From Carpediemonas membranifera BICM (lineage: Eukaryota; Protista; Fornicata): a stretch of DNA of 64,000 nt. The stretch lies in assembly GCA_019828565.1 (NCBI GenBank), contig JAHDYR010000002.1:248001-312000 (forward strand), written 5' to 3'. A program made the translations under genes and the position numbers. How positions within the stretch are numbered: position 1 is the first letter of the stretch; each line of letters opens with the position of its first letter. This document shows positions 38,138-59,854 of the stretch, in pieces. A model generated the notes under the pieces. That model had not been told where the DNA came from, did no database searches, and saw only the letters and a list, made by a program, of their open reading frames with translations.

Positions 38138-41100
38138 GAGAAAGAAAGAAAATTTAACGTATCCTGTACACCTGTGTAAATCAGGGAATTACCAGTTTGC
38201 ACCACCCCATGTCCCCGGGAACGCCTTAGCGTGTTGACTTCCCTTCGTGAGCGAGCCTGATACTACGTTGGGGGCGTTAGCACCATCACCGTCAGGGTCC
38301 AGCTGGTAAGGCTGGGTAGTCCCTTGCATGTTGACCTATCAACTGGCTGGCCCGATACCCCCAAAGTCGGGATAACCCAGGTCTTACTCTTGGGGGTCCT
38401 TCGGGCCCCCGTTCTGCCTGGCACCCGCAAGGCCTTGCCCTGCACACCCGCCACCGGGGCCTTCTGCTCGGTTTCCCCCTACAGGGCTCCTCTCAGGGAT
38501 ATGTTCTCCATACCATTCGACCCAGTTTGCAATTTTTCAGGCACCCGCCGAAGCGGTTTCGGGCTTGGCGTTTGCCGTACCACGCAATTGGGCCAGTTAT
38601 GAAACCCACCGATCATCGCTGGGTAGCTATATGTTTCACGGCTGCGTTCGGGCTCTTCCACACTTTCCGTTCCGGCATGGATCCCCTCCTCAAGGATTTG
38701 TTCCCTATAGGGCTTCTTCCTAACTTCCGGCTGGTTCCAAGTTTTGGGTGCCGGGCCGTTCGGCGCAGCTCTGTTTTGGTCCAGGTGCCGCCCAGGTGGT
38801 ATTGTTGCCTTATGGTTACCCTCCTGTTTGGCTGCTGCGCCCCGATACCTCGCACGTACGTGTATACATGTGCATACGTGCCCCGCCCTATGGCTCTGGG
38901 TTATTTCTTATACGTGTGAAGAGTGTGCCGGTTCTGCCGGCTGAATGTTGTCTACGTTCCCAGTATGGGTGAGCGTTTGTGTGTTAGCGAGATTAGTGGG
39001 CAAAGGCATGGGAAAGAACCAACAGGGGAGTTAAGCAAGGGTGCGTCCTGGCACCGACACTGTTTGTGCTGTTCATGGCTAACTGGCCCCACCTGGCCAG
39101 AATGAAAATCAAGGGAGAACGGTACGACATCAGAGAACCGCCAAGGACCACGAGCCACCTCAGCGACCGACTACCGGCAGCACTTACCATGTTTGTGGAT
39201 GACACTGCGGTCACAGGGAGCAAACCGGAGCATAGCCAGATGGTCGCCAACATAATGGTGGACATAATCAGAGAGCATGAAATGAGGGTGAACGCCCAGA
39301 AGAATGTAATGATTAGCGTGGACAGAACAGCCCTAGTCAGGATCGAGGGGGTAACACTACTGCCAGAGAAGGAGGCGAGATACCTGGGATTATGGATCGC
39401 AAGTGGGAAGGACCCTATGTCGGCCTGCATAAGGCGGAAACAGGAGCAGAGCGAAAGGTACAAGAGACTGGTGAGATGGGCAGGGTGGACCAGGGCAAAC
39501 ATGCCAGCACTAGCGAGCAGGCTACTACTGGAAATATATATATGGCCCAGGATCCTCTTCGGAGTCGAGGTGTGGGGGAACGCACCGGGAGTTAGAAGGA
39601 TCTGGAATGACTGGCAGGGAATCATGGCAGGAACAGGACCGGGAGGGGGCGCAGCCATGAGGCTGATGAATGGATGGGTGGACCTCCAGGCACACATGGA
39701 ATGGCTGGCAGTCAAAAGGATAGTCAACTACAGGGACCAGGATATACCAGTCAGAAACAGAGAATGGGGGCGAGGCACGGTTATGTGGGAAGCTAGGGGA
39801 GAGAGTGCAGCATCTACTGGAGGGCACCAGAGAGGGAGCCCCCAAACCAGCGCTACTGGATTATGGCATGGAAACGATCAGGAGGGGGTGGATGAAGCGG
39901 TGCAAAAGCCGTACGGCACTAGGACTAATGGAAATCATGGGGACAAGGAAATTAAGCAAGTGTCTGCAAGGTAAGCCTACGGTAGACCGAAAGGCTGGGA
40001 AGGGGCAAAGCAGGGCGGAATGGAAGAGAATTGTATCCATTGCAGCCAATGTCAGCCCATCCCCATCGTCGGCAGAGAGAGGGGAGGGCCCTATGAGAGC
40101 CATCACAGAGCTGGCCCAAGGCGCTGACCTGAAGAGAGAAATTAGCAGACTATGCCCCCTATGCTCGGAGGAGTCGGAGGTGAGCCTGTTCTACAGGATC
40201 ATTAGGGAAAAGCCAGGACCAGCAAGGAAGCAGGAAATGATCAGGGAGTGGGCAGAGGGCCAGAGGCTAGGATCGGCAGCGCACATAATCTGTGAATGCC
40301 CGGCAGTAGACAGGGGAGAAGCTTGGACAAAGCTGTGGACAGCAGCGAAGCACAAAACTAAGGACTTGGAAGTAAGGCAGGGCCCCCAGGGCGAATGGTA
40401 CCAGGAAAGACCCATCCTAGAATTACAGCAACTAATAATATGGGGCTCGGAGGACATTTGGGAAGGCCTCACGGCAGGACTACGGGAACTGGCAAAGGTT
40501 TACAACAGCTTCAAGGTGGAATAGAAGCATGTCATGAACCCCTGACTCCAGGACCGGGAAGGGATGGACAAGGAATCAGCCATGGACCACCCTCGCTGGT
40601 GCTAAGCTCCTGGGATCAGTGAGGAAAGGCCCCACGTATCCCGGTAGCCAGGAACCAAAGCAAGGGAAGGAACGACTGCAAGGAAATAACAGGAAGGACA
40701 GACCAGAAATAAGAAAGAAAGGACATGCAACAAGGACAGAGCAAGGATAAGGTCAAGGAAATCCATATTCATATGGTTGCACCACTCGTTGGGACCCCAA
40801 GGAAACTGCAGGGACTGGCCACGGGGGTCGGAGGGGCACAGGTGCCCCTGCCGCCCTTGTTAACGACATGGGAAACCAAGGACATGTAGTGCAAGCGAAA
40901 AAAAAGCAAGCGAAAACACTGCTGCTCAAAGCAGTATCGCCGACCAACGCTTCCTGACGAGGAAGCACCTCAAATATGTTTCATCCGCCCCTCCTGTCCT
41001 CAAAAGACAACTACTAGCAGGCATTGCCTTTATTGGGGACCCCGTAATCATCCATCCCTTCAAAACTGAGCTTGCAACACACTCATCGACGGGCAATTTC

Positions 41101-41336
41101 GTCTCGGTGGCAATCCCAAACCTAAAACGGGACAACGCCCGCTATAAGCGGGCTAAGGATGCCTGTAATGACCTACTCCAAGATGCTGAGCACCTTGCAG
41201 CTGCATTTGGGCTCTCCATCCGGGAAGGTATCCTCAAACTCTTTCCCCTCATTGCCTATGATCTTGTCCACACGGTTGGAACGCTTAAGGCTGCCCTAAT
41301 CCACTGCAGGTTCACGGGACTCCCCCAGCTAGCAGC

Positions 41337-42458
41337 ATGGACTGGAGCAAGTTCGCAGATTTCATCTCCGCCAGATGCCCTACAGTGTTAGACCAACGGA
41401 ACGATCCTTGGCCTCCAACCATATCCACTGTCCCGAACTCTCCGAGCCTGACATGGCAGGCAGTCGGTCAAAGAGAGCCTCTTGGTCCCCGCATCGCTCA
41501 CTCCGGCCGGCCCGGCCCCATTGTATCTCCGGATGGTCTCAACCTCACGCCGTTCATGGGCCTCGAGGTAATCCACTTACTGTATGGCGCCTCTCCCGTG
41601 TTGGGAGGACATGCGATGACTGAGCTTTATGCCGAATGGGGTGGAGCCACAGCGGCCGACCTTCAGTCTTCCTTATCGAATACCTTATCAGACAGCCTTA
41701 TCTCTCCCATTCGCCGGAAGGCCTATCCAGTCGATGACTCTACTATATCCATAAGTTCCTGTTCAAACTCTGATGTTGAGCTCGCAAGCCCGATCCCTGT
41801 TAGCGTGGAAGAGGTTGCGCGGCAGATTCGGAAAGAAATATCGTCTTGCGAAGAGAACAGCATTTATCCATCATCCCCGATCGTAGCTGAGGAGCCTAAC
41901 GCCCGTTGGGGCCCTCTCATGAGCATCCCAGTTCACGCCGACGGCAACTGTGGCCTTCACTCACTTGCTGTCTCTCTGGGTATGACGGGCCTGACGAGAC
42001 GAGAAGCCGTGTCGAAACTTGCCTCCGCCATCCAGAATGGTACAGTGGATCTTAACTCCTCGTGGAGATCCACGGTGCGCACTTTAACCACACACACCAC
42101 CGCTAGCGACATTGGTAGTGCCTTCCTATCCACCACAGACCTCCGCAATATTGCATCGCTCTTTGGAAAAAATGTGCTTATTGCTCATCGATATGATGCC
42201 AACACAGTCTCAGTAACCATCCCAGCATTATCCGAGTTCTCTACACTTCCTCTCAATATTGACGCGCTCAAAACGATGCTCAAAACCGATTACATCCTCA
42301 TTAGACTGAGTGCTCTGCACTTCACGCCTCTTTTTCCGTCTGTGAGGAGCGCAGAAGCAAGGCGCCTGCAATATGCTGAATATCGTCCAAGAAGAGCCCC
42401 CTCTAGTGTGGCTCGCAACAACATCGCCGCTGAAGGCCTCGATAGCGCCCCCCTCTAG
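41337..42458 (+). CDS. LINE-A segment with an OTU-like cysteine protease domain
   Basis: IPVHADGNCGLHSLA (catalytic Cys loop) and LSALHFTPL (His). Confidence 0.75.
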   Translation: MDWSKFADFISARCPTVLDQRNDPWPPTISTVPNSPSLTWQAVGQREPLGPRIAHSGRPGPIVSPDGLNLTPFMGLEVIHLLYGASPVLGGHAMTELYAEWGGATAADLQSSLSNTLSDSLISPIRRKAYPVDDSTISISSCSNSDVELASPIPVSVEEVARQIRKEISSCEENSIYPSSPIVAEEPNARWGPLMSIPVHADGNCGLHSLAVSLGMTGLTRREAVSKLASAIQNGTVDLNSSWRSTVRTLTTHTTASDIGSAFLSTTDLRNIASLFGKNVLIAHRYDANTVSVTIPALSEFSTLPLNIDALKTMLKTDYILIRLSALHFTPLFPSVRSAEARRLQYAEYRPRRAPSSVARNNIAAEGLDSAPL

Positions 42459-42781
42459 TGTGGCCCGCAACAACATCGCCGCTGAAGGCCTCGATAGCGC
42501 CCCCTCTAGTGTGGCTCGCAACAACATCGTCGCTGGAGGCCTCGATAGCGCCCCCTCTAGTGTGGCCCGCAACAACATCGCCGCTGGAGGCCTCGATAGC
42601 GCCCCCTCTAGTGTGGCCCGCAACAACATCGCCGCTGAAGGCCTCGATAGCGCCCCCTCTAGTGTGGCCCGCAACAACATCGCCGCTGAAGGCCTCGATA
42701 GCGCCCCCCTCTAGTGTGGCCCGCAACAACATCGCCGCTGAAGGCCTCGATAGCGCCCCCTCTAGTGTGGCCCGCAACAAC
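42396..42781 (+). repeat. 51-bp coding tandem repeat (APSSVARNNIAAEGLDS), about 7.5 copies
   Basis: Directly visible; two units carry an extra C that shifts the frame. Confidence 0.92.
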
Positions 42782-43546
42782 CGTGATGGCGTCCATGGCG
42801 CTCTCATAGGCTTGTCTGGCAAGAGAGAGGGTCCTGTTTCTCATATCCTAGTGGTCGACTTTGAAGGACTAGGAACTGCCGTAGACCGCAGAGCCACCAA
42901 ACAGAGTCGCGTCTCATATCCCGTAGAGGCCGGCGCCACACTCCTAGCCCGCGTCAAGGATCCTGAAACGGGGATAATGATGTGGGACGTCGCAGGGGTC
43001 CACTGGGGCGGCTTAGAAGTTGATATCCCAGCGCAGTTAATGCAGACAGCTTTATACCAAGCGGCAGTTGTTCATGGGTGTCCTCCCATGAGCTTCAGAG
43101 TACACCCCGACCACCCCGGGATCTCATTCCCCAGCCCGACCGACTGGCTTCACCACCTCACGGTCATAGTGAGCTCCCTCCCGAACTGCATCATGGTCGC
43201 CAAAGACCCGAGACTTGAGAACTCCGTCCTAGAGTCATGGGTCTCGGAAAGCGATGCCCCCTTCCTTGACAAGGTCTATGACATAAGTGATCTAGAGTCC
43301 ATAGACAAAAGATCCTTTGGGCATATCCATGACTACTGCCGTTCACCCGAGTTCTCTGAGGCGATGTCGATAGCCCAATGTCTCACAATGGTGAAGTGCC
43401 CCTGCCCGTACCACATTGGAACAGATCCAGGCTACCATTGTGCTCTCAGTGACACTGTAGCTTTCGCGGCGGTACTGCACACAGTCTCATGTCTCGACCG
43501 AACATCTAGGGGAGCTATCACATCCACGTACTCTGGAAATCACTGA
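42782..43546 (+). CDS. Maelstrom-like DEDD/ECHC nuclease domain (LINE-A)
   Basis: Motifs ILVVDFEG, YPVEAG, VHGCPP, MVAKD…E, KVYDISDL and CPYH…YHCALSD. Confidence 0.75.
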   Translation, partial: RDGVHGALIGLSGKREGPVSHILVVDFEGLGTAVDRRATKQSRVSYPVEAGATLLARVKDPETGIMMWDVAGVHWGGLEVDIPAQLMQTALYQAAVVHGCPPMSFRVHPDHPGISFPSPTDWLHHLTVIVSSLPNCIMVAKDPRLENSVLESWVSESDAPFLDKVYDISDLESIDKRSFGHIHDYCRSPEFSEAMSIAQCLTMVKCPCPYHIGTDPGYHCALSDTVAFAAVLHTVSCLDRTSRGAITSTYSGNH

Positions 43547-43562
43547 TGCATGGAGGAAAGAC

Positions 43563-46500
43563 TTGGATGTCCTCATCGGCAACTGGTCCTCTCTCCTGCC
43601 CGACCTGGCCGTGCTACTACTCCAAGACCTCCACCTGCCAACGCTTGAGGAGCTGCACCACATCCTCAAGGAGTACGTAATAGCACCTAAGGGTGGCTGC
43701 TCCTTCCCCACAGGTGATAGGGCCAGACAGGCTATGACGTGCCGTCAATTTATTGCAGTGCGGAGCCCAGCTCGGCGAGGGTGGGAATGGTTTGATCCTC
43801 TTGCCAAGATGATAGCGGTGGCGGATGCGGCAGGCATAGTCCCTCCAAACAGCCTAGAACAGCCATTCATCAGGATAGCGACGGTGAATAACGACAGCTC
43901 CTTCAGCAATCAGTTGACGGCTCAGCAAGTTTACTGGGAGTGCCCTCCTCACCGAGACCTACCGCAATCTGCTGCAGAGCTTCTGGCTCTCAACGTTCCT
44001 CCCTCGGCAGACAACTCCAAAGGAGTAGTCAAGAGGTCCTACAGAGCGCCGGATCATTGGTTTCTAGTCCCGAGAATCCCCAACAAGCCAGTGCGAGGGC
44101 TCCGCAAAGTCAGACTGAGAGGGCCCATGACTCGAGGAGACATGGATGCCCTCATACAGAAGGCAGAAACAGCATGGGTCAGCGAAGCGTGGGACCTTTC
44201 TCCGGTGTTCAAAGCTCTCCAGAGTGCCCGAGCTCACGACGGTAACTGGAGTAAGGTTGAGCCACCGGCTTCTTCCACGCCAGCTCCAAGCTTAGCCACG
44301 CGAGTCTCGCCTGCGACCTTCAGGAATCAGAGAGGGCGAAGTCAAGCAGGTAGACGACCAGTAAATGGTCACCTCTACTCGTGGAATTGCACATCACTCA
44401 ACATCACCAAGATGACTCTTGCTCTAGTACAAGACGTGGACATCATGGCCATTCAGGAGCTATGGTGGTGGGCCCAGTCCCCGGAGCTGCCCACAACGAA
44501 TGACAAGGTCCTGCTATACCACGGAGTGATCAAGTCAGAGTCCGAGACAAAGCATCTAGGCGTAGGCATCATGCTGAGGAAGGAATTAGCTGAGCTCTGC
44601 ACATACGTCGAGAACCAACCCCACTCTCCAAGGTTGATTCAAGCTGACCTAGGCTGCGTGTTTGTAACAGCTGGCAAACTGAAGGTCCGTGTCATGTCCA
44701 TCTATAGTCCATGCACGGGAGCACAAGCCAAGAAAGAGTTCCACACTCTACTGTCCTCCGAGGTGAAGAAAGCTATTGAGCAAGGGCTCCAAGTTCTTGT
44801 CATGGGAGACTTCAACACGAACCTACTAGATCCATCGACGCTGTGGGCTACCACCCTAAAGGAGTGTGGCTTGAGACTGGTAGTGCCCGACGGCCCGACC
44901 TTCATGGACAGAGTAATTGATGGCATCGCAGCAACACCTAAGCTGGCTGATCTCATCAAGAAGCCGCTCACAGTATCCCTTGAACCCAAAGGACACAGAG
45001 CGGTTGTAGCAAGATCAGGCATAACGGGTTACTTTCGCACGAGGAGCAAGGCAACAGCAGTCCTCAACGAAAGACATGTGGCTAACGTACTTGAATGCAG
45101 CAAGGATCATCGAAAGGCGAGGACTCTCCTGAGGAACATCAGCCACCTTGATGTCGACCAAGCCTTTCAAAGCCTGACGTCGACTATCAACCGATGGGCG
45201 TTGGTGGACACTGCGGCCTCACATGAAGTGAGAGAAGTCGAGAGAGCAGAAGACTACGACCACTGGTTTGTCGCCGGAGAGCAGATCGGTATTTCCCCTG
45301 AACGGCTCTATGAGCTCATCATTGAGGATCATCGCCACCAACATCAGCTCAAGGAGAGGACGAGCAGAGGCCCCAAAGCTCTCGTGTGCTCTGAGCTATC
45401 ATCAGCAATGCTATCAGTAGCGTTAGCATCCTCGGAGAGCCACGCCCACTCAACACTCAAAGCCTACCATGCCCGAGCCAAGCGAGTCTCTGAGAGCATG
45501 GATGTCATGTCCCCTGAATTCTTTAGATACGTCCATTGGAAGCTTTTTGAAGGGGCAGGCCAGAGTGTCTGGTCTTCGCAGAGACCTGGAAGGCTTACTC
45601 AGAGGACCCGGCCTTCCTGCTACCACCACAGTAGGAGGCAGAGTGATCACCAACCGAGAAGAAGTAGCCAAGGCCTTCGAGGAGTGGTATGCGTCAGTAT
45701 CATATGTGGCAGGAGCAGTAGAACCATCCATCTCTCGCCCCCGATATAGAGCTCGAAATCACGGACACTCTCCTGGAAGGGGCTCTCAAATCTGCCAAGA
45801 ATAGATCAGCCCCAGGCAGTGATGGACTAACCCCGGCAATTTTCAAATATTGCCCAGTCCTCAAGGAGGCGCTCAAGACTCTGCTACAGAAGTGCATTGA
45901 CCAACTCAAGACCCCAGCAGAGTGGCATACCGCCGTGGTAATTCCATTGAAAAAGCCCGGCTCTACTAGCGATGCTCCTGTGGCGTTCAGACCTATCTCC
46001 CTACTTTCCACAGCCCACAAGGTGCTCGGCACAATGATGATCCGCACGATTGACCGAGACAACCCTCTTCCCCCTGAACAATACGGTGCAAGGCCGGGTG
46101 TTTCATCGGTTGATGCACTATGGGCTATTGAGCACGCGAGACGTGGGTTCAAAGCGACCCACATTGGGACTCTGGACGTGGCTAAGGCCTTTGACCGTGT
46201 CCCGAGGAGAGATGCATTGGACTCGTTGAGGGGGAACAGAAGGGCCATTGAGATGTTGAAGGAGATGCATTTGCACACAAGGATCTCTATGCGAGGTAGC
46301 AGCACTAGCGCCGCTACCAACACAGGAGTACGGCAAGGATGCACCACTGCTCCCTTCATCTTCACAAGATACCTTGCGGAAGTCCCTCACATCATTGCAA
46401 GCTTAACCGCTCTAGGGAAGGAAGCAATTGAGAAGCTTCCTCCCGACATAGAGACCCTGAGACGAGTGGCAGCAAGGCCGTGCGTTCCCTGGATTGTCAC

Positions 46501-47652
46501 AGTCCTGTTCGTTGATGACATTACAATAGTAGCTCCCTCCCCTTAAGTGGTTGGAGGCAGCACTTACGGCGGCATGGACATGCATGCTAGCGCTATCCTT
46601 GGAGCCCAACGATAAGACCACCTATGTCTCAGAGGACGACACCCCCTCCCTCACCATCCATGGCAATCCAGTCATTAAGAGAGACGCGGTCAAGCTCCTA
46701 GGGGTCCTCTTCGATACGTCCCGAGACTTCTCCACCCAGAATAGGACTATGGGCGAAAGGATAGACAGAGAGCTACGACTACTGAGAGCTAGCGGCGTGA
46801 TGCACTCCAAGTTCTGTCCTCGCATTGTAGAGGTCTACACCCTCCCCAAGCTGCTGTACGGGTGGAGCGTCTGGGCTAATCATAAGGCTGTCTCCCAGGT
46901 AGGCAAGCTTGCATCGGCAGCCCTAAGGATCAGCCCAACTGCATCGGAGGCGAAGTACCTGGAGCTAGGCTGGCTGCATCCAGAGGCAATGCTCCTGCTG
47001 GACAGATTCAAGCAAGGGGGTGAGATGGGCGAGAATCCATCCGGGCAAGGATCTCCCAGACTGCATTGCTGAGGCACAAGGCAGCCTTGGCCTGTCCCAC
47101 TCCGACAGCCTTGACCTAGCAGCCTGTCGAGCAGCCCAGCTCTCTCACGACATAATCTGCCGTGGTAACAAAGTGGCTGTCAGGAGATACGTCACGGAGT
47201 CGGCACTCACCCGCCCTTTTACCCGCTCTAACTACCCGGCCAGGCAGCCATACCTCGACCATCTAACGGCTGGGCCAGCGAAGCGCCTCGCGATGCTACG
47301 GCTATCGTGTCTACCAATGCCAACGAGAGGGGCTCTTCCTGACGCGTGGCAGCCGGTCAGGGGAATCCTACAGGACCTGAAGGATGAACCGGAAGCCGCC
47401 GCAGCTCTTGAGGCATGTCCTCTCTGTCAGGGTGAGGCCATCGCCGCGGCTGTGATTGAGATCCTGACGTCCCCTACCAAGACCTTAGCAGTGCTGAGAT
47501 CCAGGACGTGGGTTGTCCTGAACCAGACCCACTTGGCTAAGTGCGACCACTTCAAGATTAACCCCATCCTCCTTTTCAAGGACCCCCTGACCCTGAGCAG
47601 GCGTGACGACGCCAAGCTCACACATATGTTGAGTGTACTTTGTGACGCGTGA
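43563..47652 (+). CDS. LINE-A APE endonuclease + reverse transcriptase (several frameshifts)
   Basis: APE motifs SWNC, AIQE, SIYSP, MGDFN and IDGI. RT motifs APGSDG, FRPISLL, QYGARPG, LDVAKAFD, GVRQG, FVDD and KLLGV. C-terminal CPLC…HLAKC. Confidence 0.9.
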
Positions 47653-48743
47653 CTGGTAGGTTCCCTCGCTTACATAGGAAAACGCCACCGTCCTCCCCGG
47701 TCTCAGGACCTCCTCGATCATCGTCCTGAGGGAGCCCCATCGGGCTCGGAGCACAGAGTCCCGCAGCGCCAAGAGCTGGAAGTTGTGAGCTGGCCGACCC
47801 GCGTGGGTCATCTTTTTACCCTTCTTCGAAGGGGTTTTAGGCCCTCCTCTCCCTGCAGCTTCAGAACAGTACTCTTGGGCGCCGCAGCTCTGGCTTCCAA
47901 TGTTATGAGAACCGTTGCCCTCCTGCGGCTGATCACCGCTCGTCTGGCTCGGGTTGTGGCCAGTGCCTGGAGGTGGACACCCCGGCACTGTATCAAAAAA
48001 TAAACTCAAAAACTCAAAAACTAGTGCAAGCGAAATGTTGTAAGGGGTAACAGGACAACCAGGCCTAGTGCCTGGGGGTACACCACCCATGCCCTGACCC
48101 ACGCCACCTAACCGGGGTAGACAGCATGGACTTAGTCACTTTCCCCGCCTTCGGGTAGGCTTCTTAACAGAGTCGAGGGGGCATGGAATTGGGGAACCGG
48201 ACAGACGAGAGGGTGCCGTGGCTGAACGGCTCTACAAGGACTGCAGGGAAGCAAGGAGTGTCATAGTCAAGGTTCTGCAGGACGATCCTGCCTGTCAATG
48301 CCCCGAGGACAGACCCCCAGGCTCCCCGGATAGTTGCCGGACTTTCAGGGAGACAGGAAAGCATATTTGCACGGAGATGGCCGCAGGGCCTCTGGGGCGA
48401 TTGGAATCGGCTTTCCGCGGAGACAGTAGCACCGAAAGCCCAAGGCAAACGCTGCTGACCAGTTTGCCACGGGAAATAGGCAGTACCCCGGGGCACTCAG
48501 CTCCAAGACAACGGGAAACAAGCTCAGTCCGGGGTCAGAATCCAAGCACCATAAATTTCTTTCTTTCTTGTTAGCGAGATTAGTGTTCGGGGTTGAGTCC
48601 CCCTTCCGCGGCTGGGTGCTACCGGGGTACGTGGGGCTTGCGTCCCCCGCTGATCCCAGGAGCGCTCCGCTTCGGTTGAGGCGGGGGGTTGGGTCCCAGT
48701 TTGACCCTGGTCCCAGAGGTCATAGGATTCTGGGATGGTGTAC

Positions 48744-50151
48744 TTACCCGTCTTTCCGGAGGTTCAGAAGGGCACGTCTGCCGTTCTGCAGTCCCTCTCT
48801 GACGGTATGGTCCTCGCTGCGGAGGAGCCAGAGCATTTCCAGGATTGCCCTTGAGTTGTACCACTCCGCCTCCTGCCCTTGCCTTAGGGCGTGGTACTGT
48901 GTGCGTAGATGCGCCTCCGCCAGGATGTCATTCCATCCTTCTGGGCGTTCTACCGCCTTGCATTGGCAGATGATGTGGCTTTGTGTTCCCAGGGGCTGGT
49001 TGTATGCCCATTCTGAGAGGATTTTGGTGGTTTCCGCCGCGGTTCTGGTGACAGTGTACAGGCGAGTAATGGTGTCGCCTTCTGAGTCCAGGGTACATAG
49101 GGGGCAACATCGCTTGATCCTGCTCAGGAGGGCCTGGGGCTGGCCGATCGCGCTCCCAAGTATGGCTCTGCTTCTGCCACTGTTGCTGGGGGAGGGGAGT
49201 GTGTTGGATGCAGTCATGATTACTCTCTTGACTTCCCGTCTGGTTATCATCTCACCCTTGATCATTCCTGGTTTCTTGGGTCTCTTCCCTTGCTGCATGC
49301 TGAGGATGACTTCCGGGGCTAGTACTGTTGCCACCCCTTTGGCCGTTCGGCTCCCGGTGTGCAGTAGTTCTTCTGCTGTGAGGGTCCAGCCTCCCCTCTT
49401 TGCTCTTTCCCTGGCGGGCATCTCCTCCTGTGTGCCCTGGAGGACGCTCCGTCGCCATTGGTAGAGGCGATGTAAGACCGATCCTCTCTCCGCTGTCGCC
49501 CAGTCCAGATTCCCTAGGGGGGTCGGACGGTCCGGGTCGTGCGCAGACTCATAGAGCCTCACCGCTCTCTGCCCCATATCTGCCTCCCAGCACATCCATC
49601 CCATTAGTACACGGGCGGCTCCTCCTCCCCCTGGTCCTGTGCCTGCCATTAGGCCGCGCCAGTTGTTCCAGATGGCTCTTCCCCTGGCGCTTGGCCCCAG
49701 ATCTCGATCCCGAACTCGATCTTGGGCCAGAGGAAGGTTCTGAGGATGGATTCCGAGGTGGCGGCCGGGGTGGATCCTTTGGTCCACCCTGCTCTCCTGC
49801 CAGGGCTAGGTATTTCCGGGATTGTGACGTCTTCATTTTGATGCATGCTGCCAACGGATTCTTCCCGCTGGCTAGCCAGAGTCCCAGATACCTTGCTGAG
49901 TCTGACGCCAGTGTGGGAGTTCCTTGGATGCTGACCGCTGCAGTTACGTCGGTACTTATCACCACACTTTTGCCTGGGCTGGTCTGGAGTCCATGGGCTT
50001 CAATTACCCTGACCACTGCGTCTGTGCCTTCTTCGGCGAGCTGCGGGGTCTCGGCTGAGATGCTTGTATCATCTACAAACATTGCAATGAGGCAGTTTTT
50101 GGGCCTATCGTCCGTTGGAGGGAGGCAGGGGTCCGGGATCTCTCTATGCCG
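48744..50151 (-). CDS. LINE-B ORF2 3' part (RT C-terminus and CCHC), frameshifted
   Basis: Motifs MFVDD, YLGLWLASG and CPLC…HIICQC; continues the ORF at 54867 once the LTR element is removed. Confidence 0.85.
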
Positions 50152-53100
50152 TGTGACATGTTAGAGATGGAACGGAGAACTGTTTACATAAAGTGCACTG
50201 CAGGTTGTGCAGGATAACCCATCACACTTCCCCTCCGGAGGGCGACCTAGCGGCGTCCGCGAGTGCGGAACTTGCGCTTATAGCGGTCGAACAAAGGGCG
50301 CAGGTGCGGGTTGGTCTGGAGGTAATCGTCAAGGGCTGACAGCTGGTCGTAGTAGGCGTTATACGGGATGTAACTGTCTTCAGAATCTTCGAGGCCCTGC
50401 CAATGGATAAGCATTTCGAGGCGGCCAGAGCGTTCGCGATGCCCGACGATGGACTCGACAGGCTGTTCGTCCTGTTCGAACCCGACCAGGGTCTCAAGGT
50501 CCTTGAGCGACGTGTTATGGGCACGTTTGAACGGCACGAGGCGATCGGCATGTACGAGTAGCTCGGCCTTCGTGACCAGGTCCTGGAGGCGGTAGGTATT
50601 GGGGCTCTTCCCTTCCCCCACCATGCGGACAGGGCCGCGAATAGGGGCGAGGATTTTGGATGGAGTCTTCGTGGGGTAGCGTACGAGGACGAGTTCCTGG
50701 TCTTTCCAGGGGAACTCTAGAGTGTTGGCAGAGGAGGCCTTGGACTGCTCGTACGCCTCGATGCGCTGGCGGGCGAGGTCCTGAACCGCTTTCACGTCGG
50801 ATTGGAATTTCTTGATTGCGGCTTGGGTTCTCTGGGAGGTGAGGTTGAGGAGTTGAATCGCGTCTTCAAGCTGGTTGTCCGACAGAGTGGTGAGTCTGGT
50901 AGTTGAGCCGAAGAGGATCTCGAACGGCGAAAACCCGGTGGTGGCGTGGGTGGATGAGTTGACGACGTGTTGGACGAATGGTATCAGGTCGACCCAGTCG
51001 GTTGACTTAGCGTCGATCAGCAGTGCGCGGAGGCGGCGCATGATAGTTCCGTTGGTCCGCTCGACGATGCCGTTGGACTGTGGATGGTATGCCGTGCTGA
51101 AGCGGTGGTTGAGTGTGAGGTGTCGGTTGAGCTCGGCGATGAAGGCGTTGCGGAACTGAGATCCTTGGTCTGTCTGAATCTGCTTGGGCAGTCCGAACTG
51201 AGCCCATAGGTGGAGCATGGCAGTTGCGGCTTCCGCGGCTGAAGTGCTCTTGGTAGGATGGAGGAGCACGTATTTCGAAAATGTATCGATGAAGACGACG
51301 ATATGGGCGAACCCATCGCAGTTAGGCAGGGGCCCGATCGTGTCGATCTGCACGGACTCGAATGGGGACAGGGTCTGGGTGGAGTGCCAGGGGGTTGAGG
51401 TCTTCTTGTGGGCCTTCAGCTTCTGGCAGACTGGGCAGGTGGCCACATAAGTGGCGACGTCGTCGCGCATAGACTTCCAGGAGTGGCCGGCGGCCTTGAG
51501 GTTGCGGATCGTCTGGTCGACCGCGACGTGTGCGAACTTCCCAGCATGCGCCTGGACGATGGTGTCGAGATGGTCGTCCGTCGTTGACTCGTCCGCGCTG
51601 GCGCGGACGGGGGGCCTGGATAGGGCGTCGGCGACGAGGTTTGACGAGCCCGGAATGTGCCGGATCTCGAACGGGTATTCTGAGAGGATTAGGCGCCACC
51701 TTGTCAGCTTCCGGGTGCCCTCCTCTGATTTCATCAACAGCCAGACCAAGTTCCGGTGGTCTGTTGAGATTGAGAATGGCTTGAGCTTGAGCAGGCTACT
51801 GAACTCGGGGCGGGTGACACAGAAGACGATTGCGTACAGCTCCTGCTCGACAGTAGCCCATCGGCGTTGGGTGTCCGTGAAGGTTTTGGAGAAGAAGGCG
51901 AGAGGACGTTTGGTGCCGTCCTTATGCTGCCAGAGGACGCCGCCCAAGGCGATCGTGGAGGCGTCCGTCTCGAGGGTCCATGTGGCGTTGAGGTCCGGGA
52001 GGGCCAGGGCCTCGTGGCTGGTGGACAGTTCCTTCATACGGGCGAAGGCCCTGTCATGCTGCTCAGTCCAAGGAAGCTTGTCGCTGCCCTTGGGTGACCC
52101 TTTCAGGAGGTCGTTCAGCGGGCCGGTGGATTCGGCAGCTGCGGCGGCGAGAGTGGGGATGTAGGCGGCAAGGTGGTTGAACTTCCCCATGGTCCGGCGG
52201 AGTTCTGTGACGGTCGTCGGGGGCTGCAGGTTAAGGATGGCGTCCACGCGGGACTGGGCGATGGAGCGGCCACGCGCGTCGATCACGAACCCGCATACTT
52301 CGACCTGGTTAGCGCCGATCACGCACTTGTCCGCGCGAAGACGCAGGTTACAGTCGTCGAGGCGTTCGAGGGTCGTTCTGAGAGTTGAAAGGAAGTCGTC
52401 TTGACTGCGGGCGAAGAGGAAGATGTCGTCTATGTAGACTCTGACACCGGGGATGCCCTCCAAAAGCGACTCCATGGCCCTTTGGAACTTCGCGGGGGGC
52501 GTTAGTGAGGCCAAAGGGTACGCGCAAAAACTCATAGTGGTGACCTGGGACCGAGAAGGCGGTCAGGGGGGATCGAGGCGGGGTCGACCCGTTGTTGCCA
52601 GTATGAGGTGCGGAGATCAAGGCTCGCGAAATAAGAGCATCCGCTGGCCTCGTGTGGGAGCTCGCGAAGGTCCGGGAGGGGAAATGCGTCCGGAACGGTC
52701 ACGTCGTTCAGTGCGTTGTAGGCTACACAGAACCGGGGGTCTCCATTTTTCTTGGTTGCCATGGTGTGGGGGGACGCATACGAGGATTTCGAGTCCCGGA
52801 TGATGCCTAGACGGCGCATCTTCTCGATCTCGGCTTGTGCAGCCGAGCCGGGGGTCCCAACAAGGGGGCGGGGCCTGCACTTGATCGGCGTCGAAGACGT
52901 GAGTTCGATCACATGCGGCTCCAGGTCGCTTCCTTCCGGGTGTAGCGTCGCGTTGAACAGGCGAGGTCGTTCTGCCACTATAGCACGGACCAGAGATTGG
53001 AACTCGGGCCCGTGGTCGTCTGGCACCGTAACGGAGAGGTACTCGTCGTCTGTCGACACCTCCACCAGGTCGGCGTCCAACATGTGGTGGTCCTCAAGGT

Positions 53101-54866
53101 CGTCTGGATCGCCCATTGAGGCGGGCATGATGACCAGGCGGTCGTTGGCGATGTACCCAAGGTGGGCAAGAAGGTCCTTACCAACGAGGACTCGTCCGCT
53201 GTCACCCTTGATGACGTGGAGGGGCCAGACGGTCGTAACAGGGCGTCCGTCTACGCTAGGGAGCGTGATGGCGGCGACAGCGCGCTTACCAGTGGAGATG
53301 GTCTTGTTCTCGGCAGATGTGATCACAAGGCTCGAGTCTTCGGTTGAAAGAGCAAGCTCTTCGGCCTTGGCTGCAGAGATGGTGCAAACATCGGCTCCCG
53401 TATCAAGTTTCCCGTTACAAGGAGTTCCATCGATGTTCACCGTGGTGTTGATCGGAACAGAGGTGGTGTGAACCTCATCGGCAGAAGCTGCCTTCTTCTG
53501 GAGGTATATGCAGTTTTCTGTCGTGTGTGTGGAGTTGTAGCCGTGGTGCTTGCAGAAGTTGGAGAACCGCTCGGGGATTCGGAACTTCTTGCGGTCCTTA
53601 AACTGCGCGTAGCGGTCGCCGGAATCGAGCAGCCGGGGCTCCGGGAGGTCGTTGGCGTCGCTGCGGTCCTGGCTGTCCTCTCGGGCGGATGTCTCGGGCT
53701 TCTGCGGAGTGTCGGGCCGGCCATCGCGAGCGTGACGTGGCTTCTTGGGAGGCTTCGAAGGTGTCGAAGCCTCCTTGAACGCGCGCCAGGGTATCACGAC
53801 GTTGCCCTCGTGGTCCACGGCGAGATCGCGGAGGGCTGCAATGCATTCGGCGGTGGTGCGGCGCTGGCCGTCAGCATCCGTCTCGACCAGGGCTTTGTAC
53901 AGTGTCTTTGCGGCGCTGGTGTATCCTTCGAGGGCGAAACCAGCAACGATGTCACGCGTGGTGCTCTCGGGGAGGCGTGCGTAGTTGGTTGCGTCGACGT
54001 CCGGGTTGAAGGCGTTGAGGAGGTTCTCGACCTTGCTGAGCGCGAGCCTGTGCTGCGCCGAGGGGCCGAATAGAGTGGGGTGGGACGAGCTTGCAAGGGC
54101 AGCAAGCCGGGTGCCCCTGTCCGTGGAAGGCATCAGGGCTAAGTATAGGTGAGGGAGAATGGTCTCGGCCTCAGCAGCGAGGCGTTGGCGGAGGCTGGAG
54201 GTGTCTGCCACAGGGAACGAGGAGGGCAGACCCTCGTTCGCCGAACTAACGAAGTCCGCGCTGCGCGAGGGCTCGTCATCGAGCGGGTTGGCCAGGCAGG
54301 TGTAGGTCAGGAGGGAGATGGGTTGGCCTGGATCGGCCCGGAGGAGGGATGCGGTGTCCTGTAGCTCTTCCATAGTGTCGTCGAACAGGGCTTGGGCCCT
54401 GCGGAACGCAGGCTTCGTAAGGCTCGAGCCCTTGTACCGCGCCTCGGCGGCCGCGCAGAGGAGGAATAGGTCATCCTCCAGAAGGGCCTTGATCGCCCGG
54501 AGGCGCTTCGAGATGAGGTGGGAACGCGGGGAGAATGCCGGTTCCCCTGCATCGCGTTTGCTTCCCTCGGTGTCGCTAATGAGGGATTTGGTGAGCTCTT
54601 CGAACGTCGGGAACGCTTCCGAATGGCGCCATGAAGCCTTAATGAGTTCAAGGCTCTTGGCCGTGAGGCAGTTGAAGAACGAGCGCGGATGCTTCACGTT
54701 CAGGACCTCACGGGCCCACTTTTCGTGAGCGGCGTGGAGCGTCTTGGCGTCTGAAACGCTCTGGATAGTGTGAGCATCAGAATATCGATATTGTGACATG
54801 TTAGAGATGGAACGGAGAACTGTTTACATAAAGTGCACTGCAGGTTGTGCAGGATAACCCATCACA
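50152..54866 (-). mobile_element. Complete Ty3/gypsy chromodomain LTR retrotransposon with identical 75-bp LTRs
   Basis: LTRs at 50152-50226 and 54792-54866 (TGTGA…TCACA); 4-bp TSD GCCG; PPT GGAGGGGAAG. Confidence 0.93.
50247..54799 (-). CDS. Gag-Pol (gag with CX2HX5HX4C knuckle, protease, RT, RNase H, integrase, chromodomain); two breaks at G-runs near 52495 and 52570
   Basis: Motifs LDTGAD, YIDD, TDAS…EQE…TDH…ADALSR, HHCC, D…TDQG…GIVER and VESIVGHR…IHWQG. Confidence 0.92.
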
Positions 54867-56820
54867 GCCGGAGGTACAGTGCCGCCTGGCTTAGCCAGTT
54901 AGCTGTGAAGAGAATGAACAGAGTGGGGGCCACCACACATCCTTGCTTGACCCCCATGTTTGTTCTGGACCATGTGCTTGCCCCTCGTACCGAGATGTAC
55001 GTTTCTGTAAGTGTATTTCGGATGGCCCTCGTCAGTCTTGGGTGTACCCCCATGAGCGTCAACTTGTTCACCAGCAGGTCCCTTGGGACCGTATCATATG
55101 CTTTTGCTATGTCAAGTAGGACGCTGGTACGGTTTCCGGACTGGTGGAGTTGGGCTAGGAGGGCTATGTGATCCACTACAGTTTTCCCTTTCATGAACCC
55201 AACTTGCTCTCTGGGGATGAACTTCTCCACCGTCGGCCTGAGGCGCCATTTCAGTATCCTCCCGTAGGCTCTGTATAGGAGGGGGGTGAGGGAGATCGGT
55301 CTGTACGAGCTGGGCGTGAGCTTGTCCTTCCCAACCTTGTGGATAGGCGACACCGCTGCATACTTCCATGTGGTTGGCATGGTCCCGCTGTCGTATACTT
55401 TCGCGAGCAGGACTGTGATTGCCTCGTACGCTGACTCGGGGAGGTCCCTCAGACAATCTCCAATAATCCCGTCCAGGCCTCCGGCCGAGGACTTCCTTAT
55501 GGACTTGACCGCCGCTGTCACTTCTTCAAGCGATGGCGGATGGTCCTCCATGTCCGTTTCCGGCTCGGTTTCCCAGGTGGGTTCCTTCCCGGAGCTTACC
55601 TTCGCGTACTGCTCCTGGAGGGAGTCTGCAATCTCCCTCTGCCTTGCTAGAATCTTGTTTCCAGCCTTCAGCATCACCGGGAGACCGGCGTGCTGCTTCT
55701 CGTTCCAGAAGCGGAACACTTGGTTTGCGAGGATCCTTTTTGTCGTTTTGTACCCATCACGGGATCCAACCTCAACCTGCTCATTCCAGTCATGTTGGAA
55801 GGTCCTCCATGATCTGCTCAGTGCTCCGTTGAGGGACTTTTTGATATCTTTGGCGGCGGTTTTGCTCCAGGTGGAGGCTTTGGCCAGCCGTTCCCATACC
55901 TCACTAGGGATACGTTCCTGGTTTTCTACAGCGAATGGGTGCCTTCTGGAGGTAGCAAACCCGGTGGACAACCATTTCCTTATGAGAGTCTCCATCTCGT
56001 CCACTGGTATTTTGCTGTCTAGTGGTGGCCACTCTTCTAGCTTGGGCCCTGTTCTCCTGGGTTTGACCAGCCACGTATCGATCCGTGGGATTTCCAGTCT
56101 CTTTGATATCTCTGGTTTCCCTGTCGGGTTGTTATCCCAGGTGAGCTCTATGGCTTTGTGTGCCGACCCCCAGTGCCCGATTGTGGTCTTGTCTATTACC
56201 CTAACAACCGGGTTTTGGATACCCCCTGTTACCGCTGCATAGTCTATTGTGGACGTTCGGGAGTTAGTCCCGTACGTCGGTGCAGTTGGTGCTATTGGGG
56301 TGAGGTTCCATCGCTGGAGGGTCATCGCAGTTGCTTGCCTGAGTTTCCCTGGCCTCCTGTTCCAGTCCCCGATGATGATGATGTCACACCCCTCATAGTT
56401 CGCGACGGTTTGCTCTAGCATCCGGTCGAACTCCTCAATCTCGGGTCGTGCACATCCACTATCGGGAGCGTAGATATTGATGACTGCCGTGGCCCTCGAT
56501 GCTTTGAGGATGCTTACTTGGATTCGTGGGTTCGTCCCGTCGGACACGCCTACGTCCCATTCCGCTTTGGAGTGCGGGCTAATCAGTGTGGCCAGTCCCT
56601 TTGTGGGTCGCTTGCGCGTTGCCTCTAATGGCTTGACCTCTCCTGCACAGGCGTACTGGAGATCTACCCAGCAAGGGATGGTGGTATTACCGTACCGCTT
56701 GGTTTCCTGGAGGAGGATCGCATCAGTCCTTATCCTCTTGCGGATGGATAAAGCTATGGATCCGCTGTAATCGTTTGCGCCCGCTAGGTGCCCTTCGCTG
56801 TTTAGCGATATTATTCTCAT
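54867..56820 (-). CDS. LINE-B ORF2 5' part: APE endonuclease + RT
   Basis: Motifs ISLNSEG, LLQETK, INIYAP, IGDWN, TIDY, SAHK, AGGLDG, YRPISL, QVGF, LDIAKAYD and GVKQGCVVAP. Confidence 0.92.
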
Positions 56821-57405
56821 TCAGGTTGTTCTGACATAAACTGCGGGAGTTACCCTGCGCGCACTAATCTGCTCTTTGTAGACATTCCCTTTTTGGGCGT
56901 ACCTTTTGGTGGGTTGCTGAGGCCTCTAACCGAGCAGTCGTTTCCTTTTGGGCAGGCTTATGCCTGTATTCCCTTAGTTCCCGGCCTAGGGCATACCATT
57001 CCCTTTCACAGTCGGTGCCTCACGATGCTTGTCGGCATTGCTGCCGGTCTCCGCTTAGCTTCCTTCCTCGCCGCATGGCAGGACCATTACCTAACGAGCT
57101 TAGGTGGGAGCGACAGTGGTTGTTGCCCCTCCCAAGGCTGGAGTTACAGCCTGCCGGACAGGCAGGGCTCTTTTTACCTTTTGGTAACCCTGCCCCCGGC
57201 CCCTGTGGGGCACAGGGGTTTGTTGAAAAATTGTTTGAAAAAAGAAAGTGTTGCGTTTTTGCTCCCGCCGGAATGGTTCGCCGGTGTCCATTTGGACTTT
57301 AAGGCCCTACTAGTCACAGCCTGGCCATACATGCTGGTTCATATATATACCTTTAGCTCAGACTTATATCACACTACCCTCTGCACCTCTTACTTATGAT
57401 TGTTT

Positions 57406-59674
57406 CTACTCTCCTTCCTTCTCCTCGTCTCTCTTCCTTCTCAGGTCAGACCTGAAGTTATCCATCTTGGCTGCTAGGGTGAAGCTGAGGGCTTCGTTGG
57501 TTGCCGAGAGTCGGGCCGCGCGGCTGAGTAAGTCCTCGTTCTCTTCGGTTAGAGACGAGCACTTCTCCGTTGTCTTCCTGAGGTCCTTCCGCATCTCGTC
57601 CAACGCAGCTTGGGCTGCTCTCCGGGCTTCCCGTTCTTCCTCCAGCTCCTGGCTTTTTGGCCTTGAGCTCGTTGATGGTTCTGGCTGCAGCTTCTTCCAG
57701 CTGTTGTCTGACCTCTGCTTCTCGCCGGGCCATGGCTTGGTCCAGCAGGGCCGCTATGCCTCTGCCCAGGTCGGTGTCCTCCTGTCGTGCTCTTTTTGGG
57801 CTGCAGGTCCTCTTGGTCCACCTGTCTGACCTGGCGGGTCTTGGCTGATGGGTTGGGGGTATGGGGGGGCACAGCTCTTAGTTGGAGGGGGCCCGGGCTC
57901 TGTTCGCTCTGTCCTGCTACTTTGCGGTTGTTCAGTGACAATTTGCCCGCGTGGAGGGCCATATAGGCCCCCTATGCCGCCATTCGGCAGGTAGACCTCC
58001 GTCCTCCTGTGGAGCATCTTGGCGAGTTCAGTAGCCCTTCGTCTCACCTTTGTTCGAAGCGCCTGCTTCCTCTCGGTCCTCAGTCTGTTCTTGGCGTTAG
58101 TGCTGGCGCCTTCCGGGAAAACACAGTTCAGCGTGTCCCATGGCTTCCCCCCTTTTGGGTGTTCCACGCCTGAGCCCGCCAGGGCGAGTTTGCCTATCCA
58201 GGAGGCGCTCCTCAAGGTGCCCACTCGCCTCTTCCCTCTTTCTGCTGGTTCATCCGTGATACCCCAGTCCCGGGGGGAGGAACGAGGGGAGGAAGTTGAT
58301 GGAGCCTGTCTCCGGGTCGACACACATGTTGGCCAGGAGTTCTCGATCGTCGGCTGGGACCTCCGTGAAGTATTTGAAGATCTTCTTCCTGGCTTCTCTG
58401 CCCATGTGGCCTCCAGCTATGTCGAATTTGTGGACGGGCATCAAAGACGCCGCTTGGGATAGGGTCATCGTTTTGGTGTCGCTGACGTCTAGAGTAAGCA
58501 TCTTTTCCGCGTCTATTTCCGTGGGCTCCCCCCTCAGGTTCGCCCAAGGGAAACCGTCTTGGACAGCGCGGCGGCGCCCGTTCCACTCCGAGTGGATTTC
58601 CAGGAGGATGGGTCGCGCTGGTTCGCCTACTCTCGCGAGCGATTCTGGGTTTCCGATGATCACGGCTGTTCCTTCCAGGGCTCTGGTGATACCCTTTCCG
58701 GAGCTGAAATCGTTTTCCTCCCAGTTGGTCATGATAATCTGGCCCCGTTTGGGGTTCTTGGTGCCAAAGAGGTTGACTTGTTGGGACAATGGGGTTAGGC
58801 GACCGGCCGCCCCGGCGCCGAGGCCGTGTCTGGCGTTGACTTTGGTCGCCAGGTCCTTGTATTCATCATGGTACGGCGACTCCCTGCCCATGAGCATGCT
58901 TCCTAGGGCTGTGAGGTGGGCTTCTACCTGCCCCCAGTCCCAGCCTGGGTTGTCTCTCATCCAGAACGCTGTTGCTAGTCTGACGTAGAATATGGAGACA
59001 TCTGCTAGGGTGCAGTGGCAGTGGTGGGGTGCGTGCTTGTGATAGGGGCACACCACTTTTGCCTCCGGGCGCTGTTGGTACCTTCTGGTCCAGGTCCGGC
59101 CCAGTTCGGACTGGGGTCGGGAGGGGAGGCCGGTGAGGCTCTTCTCCCCACTATTGGGGTAGAACCAGGTCAGCGTGTCGAGGATGTTGGGGAAGATCGT
59201 GTTGAGGTCAGTTTCATCCATGAGGCGTAAGCTTAGCCAGGTGCGGAGGTTCCCGTCTGGGACGAACTTCTCACTGGTCAGGATGCTTCTCTCAGCCTCG
59301 ACTCCCTTAGCCACGATGTGGACGTGGGTCTTCTGTGGCCCCGAGTCGTCTTCCAGTCTCTTCAGCTCTGTAGCCATCTCGGTGCACCATCGCTTGGCGT
59401 GGGGGAAGTCTGCTTCGTATCCCTTGGGGGCTTTGCCCGTGGTGACGTCGACAAACGTAGCTGGTGGGCAGCCATGGATGTAGTGCGTGGCCCACAGACA
59501 TTGGTCCAGGGCATCCACTGTGATGTCTTCCCCAAGCATCCCGTGCATGTAGTAGAGGATTTGCTCGTTAGCTGGGTCGAAAATCAGTGCCGCCCCTTCG
59601 CAAATGATGGCCTCGTCTCCTTGGTTGGATCTGGCTCTTCCTTCCTCAAAGTCCACCATAGCGATCAACTGCAT
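57406..59674 (-). CDS. LINE-B ORF1: N-terminal Maelstrom-like domain, unknown middle region, C-terminal coiled coil (frameshifted)
   Basis: Motifs IAMVDFEE, IICEGA, IHGCPP, IVAKG…E and CPYH…CHCTLAD; overlapping ORFs 58250-59674, 57754-58323, 57458-57733 and 57406-57603. Confidence 0.72.
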
Positions 59675-59738: not shown

Positions 59739-59854
59739 TGCAAGAAAAAATGAGATTCACCCGTATCTTTTTCACTATTTCACACGTTTCACCAACGTTG
59801 GTGAAACGTAGAGAAACGTGCGGAAGGTACGGGTAAGTCTCATTTTTGCTTGCA
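59739..59854. repeat. Long inverted repeat / hairpin with a perfect 26-bp central palindrome
   Basis: Arms 59739-59769 and 59824-59854 give 27 of 31 Watson-Crick pairs; ACGTTTCACCAACGTTGGTGAAACGT at 59784-59809. Confidence 0.85.

Follow-up and report, generated by a model that had tools for sequence, protein, structure and literature searches.

Why should long interspersed nuclear elements (LINEs) carry a domain resembling Maelstrom (MAEL), which is known as a conserved host silencing factor and, in animals, as a disarmed nuclease? The question is raised by two elements, LINE-A and LINE-B, in a 64,000-nucleotide stretch of the Carpediemonas membranifera BICM genome (contig JAHDYR010000002.1, positions 248,001 to 312,000 of the forward strand, assembly GCA_019828565.1; hereafter the window), where an apparently armed form of the domain lies inside transposons. 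A preliminary description, made from the letters of the DNA, had proposed that both are members of a LINE lineage that stably carries its own MAEL-type ribonuclease. Our analysis agrees: the explanation that best accounts for the data, and that we consider quite likely, is that a MAEL-type nuclease is an integral module of these LINEs.

All five motifs named in that description were located in both elements. In LINE-A, on the plus strand, they are VVDFE (42851-42865), PVEAG (42920-42934), HGCPP (43073-43087), VAKDPRLE (43196-43219) and the pair CPYH (43403-43414) and HCALSD (43436-43453). The corresponding series in LINE-B, on the minus strand, is MVDFE (59659-59645), ICEGA (59605-59591), HGCPP (59476-59462), VAKGVEAE (59314-59291), CPYH (59050-59039) and HCTLAD (59017-59000). 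Common to the two domains are therefore D-x-E, a Glu on the second β-strand, HGCPP, AK-x4-E and C-x2-H-x7-H-C-x3-D. The putative DEDDh/zinc nuclease domain was placed at 42851-43500 (+) in LINE-A, where the motifs span 42851-43453, and at 59000-59672 (-) in LINE-B, as part of open reading frame (ORF) 1, on the strength of motifs, alignments and a structure model. As had been proposed, the domains are colinear yet highly diverged, with 24% identity over about 260 residues (BLASTP E 6e-6 in a single comparison). This likeness is not a chance one, because intermediate subfamilies in the same genome bridge both.

Eleven LINE domains, 22-51% identical to each other, were compared residue by residue. 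Invariant throughout are the Glu of D-x-E, that on strand 2 and that of AK-x4-E, as well as C-x2-H, H-C and an Asp at +4 from the Cys of H-C; the first Asp of D-x-E is kept in 10 of the 11. In LINE-B numbering, the DEDDh catalytic set (D31/E33, E151, H243/D248) is thus invariant or nearly so; the Exo II position is a Glu (E151) instead of an Asp, as it is in protist MAEL proteins. The Glu-Cys-His-Cys (ECHC) set, E49, C232, H235 and C244, is likewise invariant, with identical spacing. The zinc site of Bombyx Maelstrom consists of E137, C290, H293 and C302 (PMC4408791), and the C-x2-H-x8-C spacing of the LINE domains is that of C290/H293/C302. Four residues beyond this motif the LINE domains have the Exo III Asp, where Bombyx Maelstrom has Arg306. 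The LINE domains therefore hold both a DEDDh catalytic set and a predicted ECHC zinc set, and these catalytic and Cys/His/Glu positions are common to cellular MAEL proteins.

Sequence relationship to Maelstrom

To place the domain among known proteins, a hidden Markov model (HMM) of six LINE domains was searched against 1.84 billion representative proteins at a threshold of E 0.001. The search returned 19 matches. Eight were from C. membranifera itself; of six others, the two that were traced to their contigs lie on a second assembly, GCA_002919055.1. Four passed the Pfam Maelstrom cut-off with E-values of 1.7e-7 to 3.4e-4: P0015, P0016, P0018 (of the amoebozoan Rhizamoeba saxonica) and P0019, in which an RRM is combined with the MAEL domain. 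The remaining match, P0017, is a partial, C-terminal sequence from Mastigamoeba balamuthi. No generic DEDDh exonuclease (DnaQ, CAF1 or viral nucleoprotein) was retrieved at this threshold.

The relationship held when profiles were compared directly. In an hhalign comparison, the 11 LINE domains matched five cellular MAEL sequences with a probability of 99.45% (E 4.9e-22) over 200 columns that span the whole domain. In the reverse direction, a profile built solely from cellular MAEL proteins found 79 places in the C. membranifera genome, the best of which were LINE-A copies (E 2.8e-13), and among those compared its matches coincided with the LINE-domain matches. This reverse profile revealed no stand-alone MAEL gene in the genome. 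Public proteins identical to the LINE sequences, such as KAG9391364.1, are annotated as Carpediemonas membranifera. A group of gene models (KAG9395705.1, that is P0012, annotated 'Splicing factor U2AF', as well as P0004, P0006, P0007, P0011 and P0013) contain fragments of the LINE MAEL-like domain; such models are probably LINE pieces or chimeras.

In a maximum-likelihood tree with four cellular MAEL proteins, the 11 LINE domains form one clade with support of 100/99, which places the LINE clade as a deep sister to the four cellular proteins sampled. Taken with the retained acidic residues and the predicted ECHC site, these sequence comparisons support the MAEL identity first proposed, and a LINE domain that is homologous to proteins passing PF13017. 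Neither an HMG box nor any other partner domain was found in the LINE proteins by Pfam.

Linkage to the LINEs and layout of the two elements

Both elements are APE-type LINEs, i.e. non-long-terminal-repeat (non-LTR) retrotransposons: in each, the MAEL-like domain is followed downstream by an apurinic/apyrimidinic-type endonuclease (APE; Pfam Exo_endo_phos) and a reverse transcriptase (RT; RVT_1), the order that had been read from the letters. The nearest solved RT is that of human L1 ORF2p (E 1e-20). The closest database RTs outside the family, with ORF2 of L061 (a GCA_002919055.1 contig) as the query, are unnamed, distant LINE RTs of 23-29% identity.

This arrangement is repeated throughout the genome, for which the published assembly comprises 24.2 Mb in 69 contigs (PMC8516963). 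The LINE-A domain has at least 52 matches, 17 of them essentially identical, with open frames of up to 1748 codons running through the domain. The LINE-B domain has at least 144, falling into identity classes between 100% and 29%, which indicates at least ten LINE subfamilies. An APE lies directly downstream of the domain in 19 of the 20 A-type loci retrieved. For LINE-B and the remaining subfamilies, genome match coordinates place an APE-RT at a distance of 2-3.6 kb downstream of 40 domain matches, in the same orientation. The domain and APE-RT are thus linked in 59 copies overall, and the other genomic copies of these LINEs keep the domain. The full motif series stands in one open frame in 45 of the 60 copies retrieved. 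As to expression, one small public run yielded two short identical contigs (81 and 195 nt).

Domain identity and APE-RT identity, both measured to LINE-B, vary together (Spearman rho 0.77, p 3e-5, n=22). Divergence of the domain along with its element, rather than repeated capture, would be expected to give such a correlation. Related LINEs in GCA_002919055.1 carry the domain in an ORF1 of 1233-1250 residues, followed by a separate APE-RT ORF2; that of L061 is 31% identical to LINE-B ORF2. In the tree, rows on, or attributed to, GCA_002919055.1 interleave with the C. membranifera subfamilies, so that several MAEL-LINE lineages would predate the split of the two sources. Together, the sequence data present the MAEL-type domain as an integral, ancestral module of Carpediemonas LINEs, consistent with the stable carriage first suggested. 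It sits either in ORF1 (LINE-B type and GCA_002919055.1) or N-terminal to APE-RT in a polyprotein (LINE-A type), and has been found so far in C. membranifera and one further assembly.

LINE-A is a full-length copy of 7.1 kb (40901-48021, +) with a broken frame. It is flanked by an exact 14-bp target-site duplication (TSD), TAGTGCAAGCGAAA, at 40887-40900 (5', +) and 48022-48035 (3', +); the window contains this 14-mer twice, and it was absent from all 100 shuffles. An A-rich tail (47990-48021) directly precedes the 3' TSD. Since these features bound the element, the MAEL-like domain lies inside LINE-A, as had been claimed. The order within it is N-terminal ORF, 51-bp repeat linker, MAEL-like domain, APE, RT and A-rich tail. 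The N-terminal ORF (41337-42458, +; 373 aa) belongs to no known family, having no match in Pfam or PDB. This ORF, which corresponds to residues 82-453 of the LINE-A copy L013, shows by eye an OTU-like Cys-box (..HADGNCGLHS..) and, late in the sequence, a ..LHF.. motif, a label without Pfam or PDB support. In intact copies the ORF shares a frame with the MAEL-like domain and APE, and LINE-A would therefore encode a single polyprotein, possibly headed by a cysteine protease or deubiquitinase.

The linker (42393-42781, +), identified from its translation and from repeated blastn matches of L013 1300-1482, is a Pro/Ala/Ser-rich tandem array of 51-bp (17-aa) units, the number of which differs among LINE-A copies. 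The window copy is 99.5% identical in DNA to L013, and its linker is 204 bp (4 units) longer. All 1245 codons retrieved from L013 are open, from the N-terminal ORF through a short linker and the MAEL-like domain to the APE. The APE core of the window copy maps to 44418-44855 (+; Exo_endo_phos E 1.3e-7, residues 286-431 of ORF 43563-45749) and its RT, a fragment of the broken frame, to 45935-46546 (+; RVT_1 E 2.6e-19).

LINE-B (48560-59672, -) is an incomplete copy. At the DNA level it resembles the full-length copies L032, L034 and L037 only from 59672 onwards, a point immediately ahead of the MAEL-like domain's first strand, and the window copy is therefore 5'-truncated. Its 3' end, at a short GAAA repeat, is approximate, and no convincing TSD was found for it in the window. 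After the domain, the rest of ORF1 (58250-58999, -) has a translation of no known family, and its equivalent in L037 has no Pfam match. ORF2 (54862-56820, -) encodes the APE and the N-terminal two thirds of the RT (Exo_endo_phos, Exo_endo_phos_2 and RVT_1, E 2.7e-23). The RT is split by a nested Ty3/gypsy chromovirus (50152-54866, -; Pfam protease, RT, RNase H, integrase and chromodomain) that is not part of the finding: the RT alignment has its halves at 56814-54868 and 50130-49673, and the insertion point falls between the equivalents of residues 681 and 687 of L061 ORF2. The C-terminal RT part beyond the insertion (49673-50130, -) was recovered by tblastn of residues 687-841 of that protein.

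It should be noted that the apparent LINE-B ORF opens with 24 codons of flanking DNA (59743-59673) that lie outside the LINE, and a 116-nt inverted repeat at 59739-59854 therefore lies outside it too. By eye, a further stretch after the MAEL-like domain, of no known family, looks conserved between C. membranifera LINE-B ORF1 (L037:2320-3744, +) and the ORF1 proteins of the other assembly (P0009, residues 620-980; P0003, residues 690-1000). In the GCA_002919055.1 elements this post-domain region of ORF1 is followed by a coiled-coil-like stretch with weak, sub-threshold Pfam matches only. A chromodomain ORF after the LINE in one of these contigs (L061:9824-10660, +) probably marks where a neighbouring chromovirus ends.

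Possible functions and competing explanations

An Entamoeba MAEL protein with both motif sets has robust Mg/Mn-dependent exoribonuclease activity (Chen et al. 2015, PMC4408791), while animal Maelstrom, which lacks the catalytic set, binds RNA only (PMC4408791). Because the LINE domains conserve the residues that the active Entamoeba protein has, they are probably active Mg/Mn-dependent 3'-5' exoribonucleases. Acting in cis, such a domain would be the module with which the LINE ribonucleoprotein (RNP) binds and processes RNA, in the place held by an RRM, a zinc knuckle or an esterase in other LINEs; MAEL domains bind single-stranded RNA. It might trim RNA, or clear it away, where target-primed reverse transcription takes place. 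This is the role we favour, tentatively, at somewhat less than an even chance.

The exonuclease might instead be directed at the host, destroying the double-stranded or small RNAs that guide host Argonaute against the element. Two Piwi-domain (Argonaute-family) genes are present (C7:87108-88037 and C65:23790-24737), and none of the LINE subfamilies seen has lost the MAEL-like domain. The arenavirus nucleoprotein (NP) exonuclease has the same DEDDh-plus-zinc design and removes double-stranded RNA, which blunts host sensing; the only weak viral matches of the LINE domain were to the H-C-x3-D region of this very protein (E 0.6). On the other hand, PF00636 revealed no RNase III (Dicer-type) domain genome-wide, and the position in ORF1 beside a coiled-coil-like stretch is at least equally consistent with a structural role in the RNP. 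Counter-silencing is thus a possible function but a rather unlikely one. As a separate observation, C. membranifera may have Argonautes without a canonical Dicer.

A wider proposal is that the MAEL nuclease serves transposons as a weapon against Argonaute-guiding RNAs, besides being a part of host defence, or that the cellular Maelstrom of amoebae and animals was domesticated from a transposon nuclease and then disarmed. We think this unlikely. In C. membranifera the domain appears stable and ancestral in transposons with no stand-alone host copy detected, and the LINE clade branches as a deep sister of the four cellular proteins sampled, so that either direction of transfer is compatible with the data.

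Another role considered was that of an RNase H substitute that removes the RNA template after first-strand cDNA synthesis. Pfam found no RNase H domain in L061 ORF2 or in the window LINE ORFs and only three RNase H matches genome-wide, from which it follows that these multicopy LINEs have no RNase H of their own. At least two of the three, however, look like ordinary host genes that could serve; many LINEs manage without their own RNase H; and DEDDh enzymes are 3'-5' exonucleases, not hybrid-specific endonucleases. This role seems distinctly improbable.

We give little credence to a catalytically silent module that, as in animal Maelstrom, was kept to bind LINE RNA. Bombyx MAEL does bind single-stranded RNA at about 130-220 nM without cutting (PMC4408791). 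Yet all five catalytic positions are invariant or nearly so in LINE subfamilies of 22-30% identity, a conservation that is hard to explain without catalysis. Animal MAEL has lost these residues.

The identity itself could be questioned, the domain being perhaps a generic DEDDh exonuclease (DnaQ-H, RNase T or ERI1-like) that acquired MAEL-like Cys/His residues by convergence. Several results weigh on this side. The PF13017 check suggested in the preliminary description failed, with no match to the ORFs or the 11 aligned members even at E 10. A six-frame PF13017 search of the genome also gave nothing, but its controls were silent too and the search is uninformative. Neither sequence nor HMM searches of PDB chains produced a significant match (Drosophila MAEL, E 0.7). 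The neighbours in the ESM Atlas were unnamed 'Exonuclease' and Rv2179c-like clusters only, and those in BFVD only generic DnaQ-like phage exonucleases. Apart from these results, a homologous-protein search from the Rhizamoeba MAEL protein brought back only itself, and direct Pfam scans of the ORFs and the 11 members gave no RNase_T match.

Structure models had also been proposed as a check, and in these MAEL was among the best Foldseek matches. A first model, from 6 sequences, had a pLDDT of 61, was weak around the zinc site and served as a lead only; its best match was Bombyx Maelstrom 9nhs_F. The second, of the LINE-A domain from a 15-row alignment, reached a pLDDT of 84.1 and a pTM of 0.83; this alignment took in four cellular MAEL rows, which may have pulled the model towards MAEL. 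The predicted fold is that of an RNase H-like DEDD nuclease, with a five-stranded sheet, an antiparallel β-2 and flanking helices. By Foldseek E-value RNase T came first (1.2e-6, vs. 1.2e-4 for Drosophila MAEL 4ybg), a further point in favour of a generic exonuclease, while 4ybg had the best TM-scores (0.55/0.57). The top five VIA structural matches were MAEL domains, with a margin over RNase T of about 1 Z unit, which VIA itself counts as a tie. From the models alone, the domain has a predicted DEDDh fold, for which MAEL is no worse a match than any other. Given this near-tie in structure, it is the sequence evidence that decides for MAEL: convergence of a generic exonuclease is largely refuted and highly improbable. 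As PF13017 reaches no LINE member, the LINE domains would be a divergent MAEL branch.

Chance adjacency, or an assembly or annotation artefact that sets a host MAEL-like gene beside LINEs, has nothing in its favour except that the window copies are broken or truncated, and is ruled out by the position of the domain inside the TSDs and in frame with APE, the 59 linked copies and the same layout in GCA_002919055.1.

With a MAEL-type nuclease as an integral part of these LINEs, two questions become testable: the substrate of the ancestral MAEL nuclease, and whether MAEL has moved between transposons and hosts. At about 230 residues, with clear catalytic and zinc-site positions, the domain is experimentally tractable. 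The analysis also characterizes what appears to be the whole LINE complement of Carpediemonas, an organism without several canonical DNA-processing systems (PMC8516963).

Comparison with known systems

The protist MAEL exoribonucleases of PF13017 (EHI_192630 of Entamoeba histolytica, PMC4408791, and the profile matches P0015, P0016, P0018 and P0019) share colinear motifs with the LINE domains: (I/V)DFE, P-x-E, IHG-x-P, AKG-x3-E and C-x2-H-x7-HCAL-x-D, with both the DEDDh and the ECHC sets kept. They are single-copy host genes, whereas the LINE domains are transposon-encoded, have no RRM or HMG partner and form their own clade. Metazoan Maelstrom (Bombyx 5AF0, 9NHC/9NHD/9NHS; Drosophila 4YBG) is a host piRNA factor that has an HMG box and has lost the catalytic residues; the LINE domain differs in its intact catalytic residues, its lack of an HMG box and its transposon carrier, and matched metazoan Maelstrom in sequence only at the E of 0.7 given above.

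The C-terminal exonuclease of arenavirus NP resembles the LINE domain in having DEDDh residues with a Glu/Cys/His/Cys site and in serving a selfish, RNA-based replicator. In Lassa virus NP a zinc Cys comes directly after the catalytic His, which is also the order predicted for the LINE domain. The sequence match is local and not significant, at H-C-x3-D only (8cnl_B, 4o6h_A), arenavirus NP is absent from the top 50 VIA structural rows, and its exonuclease forms part of a viral nucleoprotein rather than of a retrotransposon. Cellular DEDDh exonucleases (RNase T, oligoribonuclease/REXO2, ERI1, Pol III epsilon and TREX1), unlike the LINE domain, have no Cys/His zinc site.

Among LINEs, an enzyme in the gag-like ORF1 position is seen in the esterase ORF1 of CR1, L2 and RTEX (PMC5408684), and the coiled-coil-like stretch in ORF1 of the GCA_002919055.1 elements, weak as its Pfam matches are, would be a further trait shared with esterase-type LINEs. 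The esterase is an SGNH hydrolase rather than a nuclease, and the LINE lineage and host group differ. We found no paper that links a MAEL or DEDDh domain to LINEs in a search of full-text literature without Repbase Reports or subscription journals; within the literature searched, a LINE lineage with a MAEL-type nuclease as an accessory domain is apparently undescribed. It would add a class of nuclease to the short list of LINE ORF1 and accessory domains (RRM, zinc knuckle, PHD, esterase and RNase H).

The nearest precedent comes from bdelloid rotifers, in which the LTR elements Juno and Vesta and the Penelope-like Athena also bear a DEDD 3'-5' exonuclease. This is an RNase D-like DEDDy enzyme encoded by ORF3, the role of which is still unclear (PMC5408684); a Cys-His-Cys motif occurs in Vesta2 and Vesta5 (Rodriguez, Kenefick and Arkhipova 2017, PMC5408684), and according to the authors such exonucleases were previously unreported in retrotransposons (PMC5408684). 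The rotifer enzyme is thus a DEDDy exonuclease in a third ORF of animal LTR and Penelope-like elements, whereas that of Carpediemonas is a predicted DEDDh/MAEL-type domain in ORF1, or at the N-terminus of a polyprotein, of the LINEs of a metamonad.

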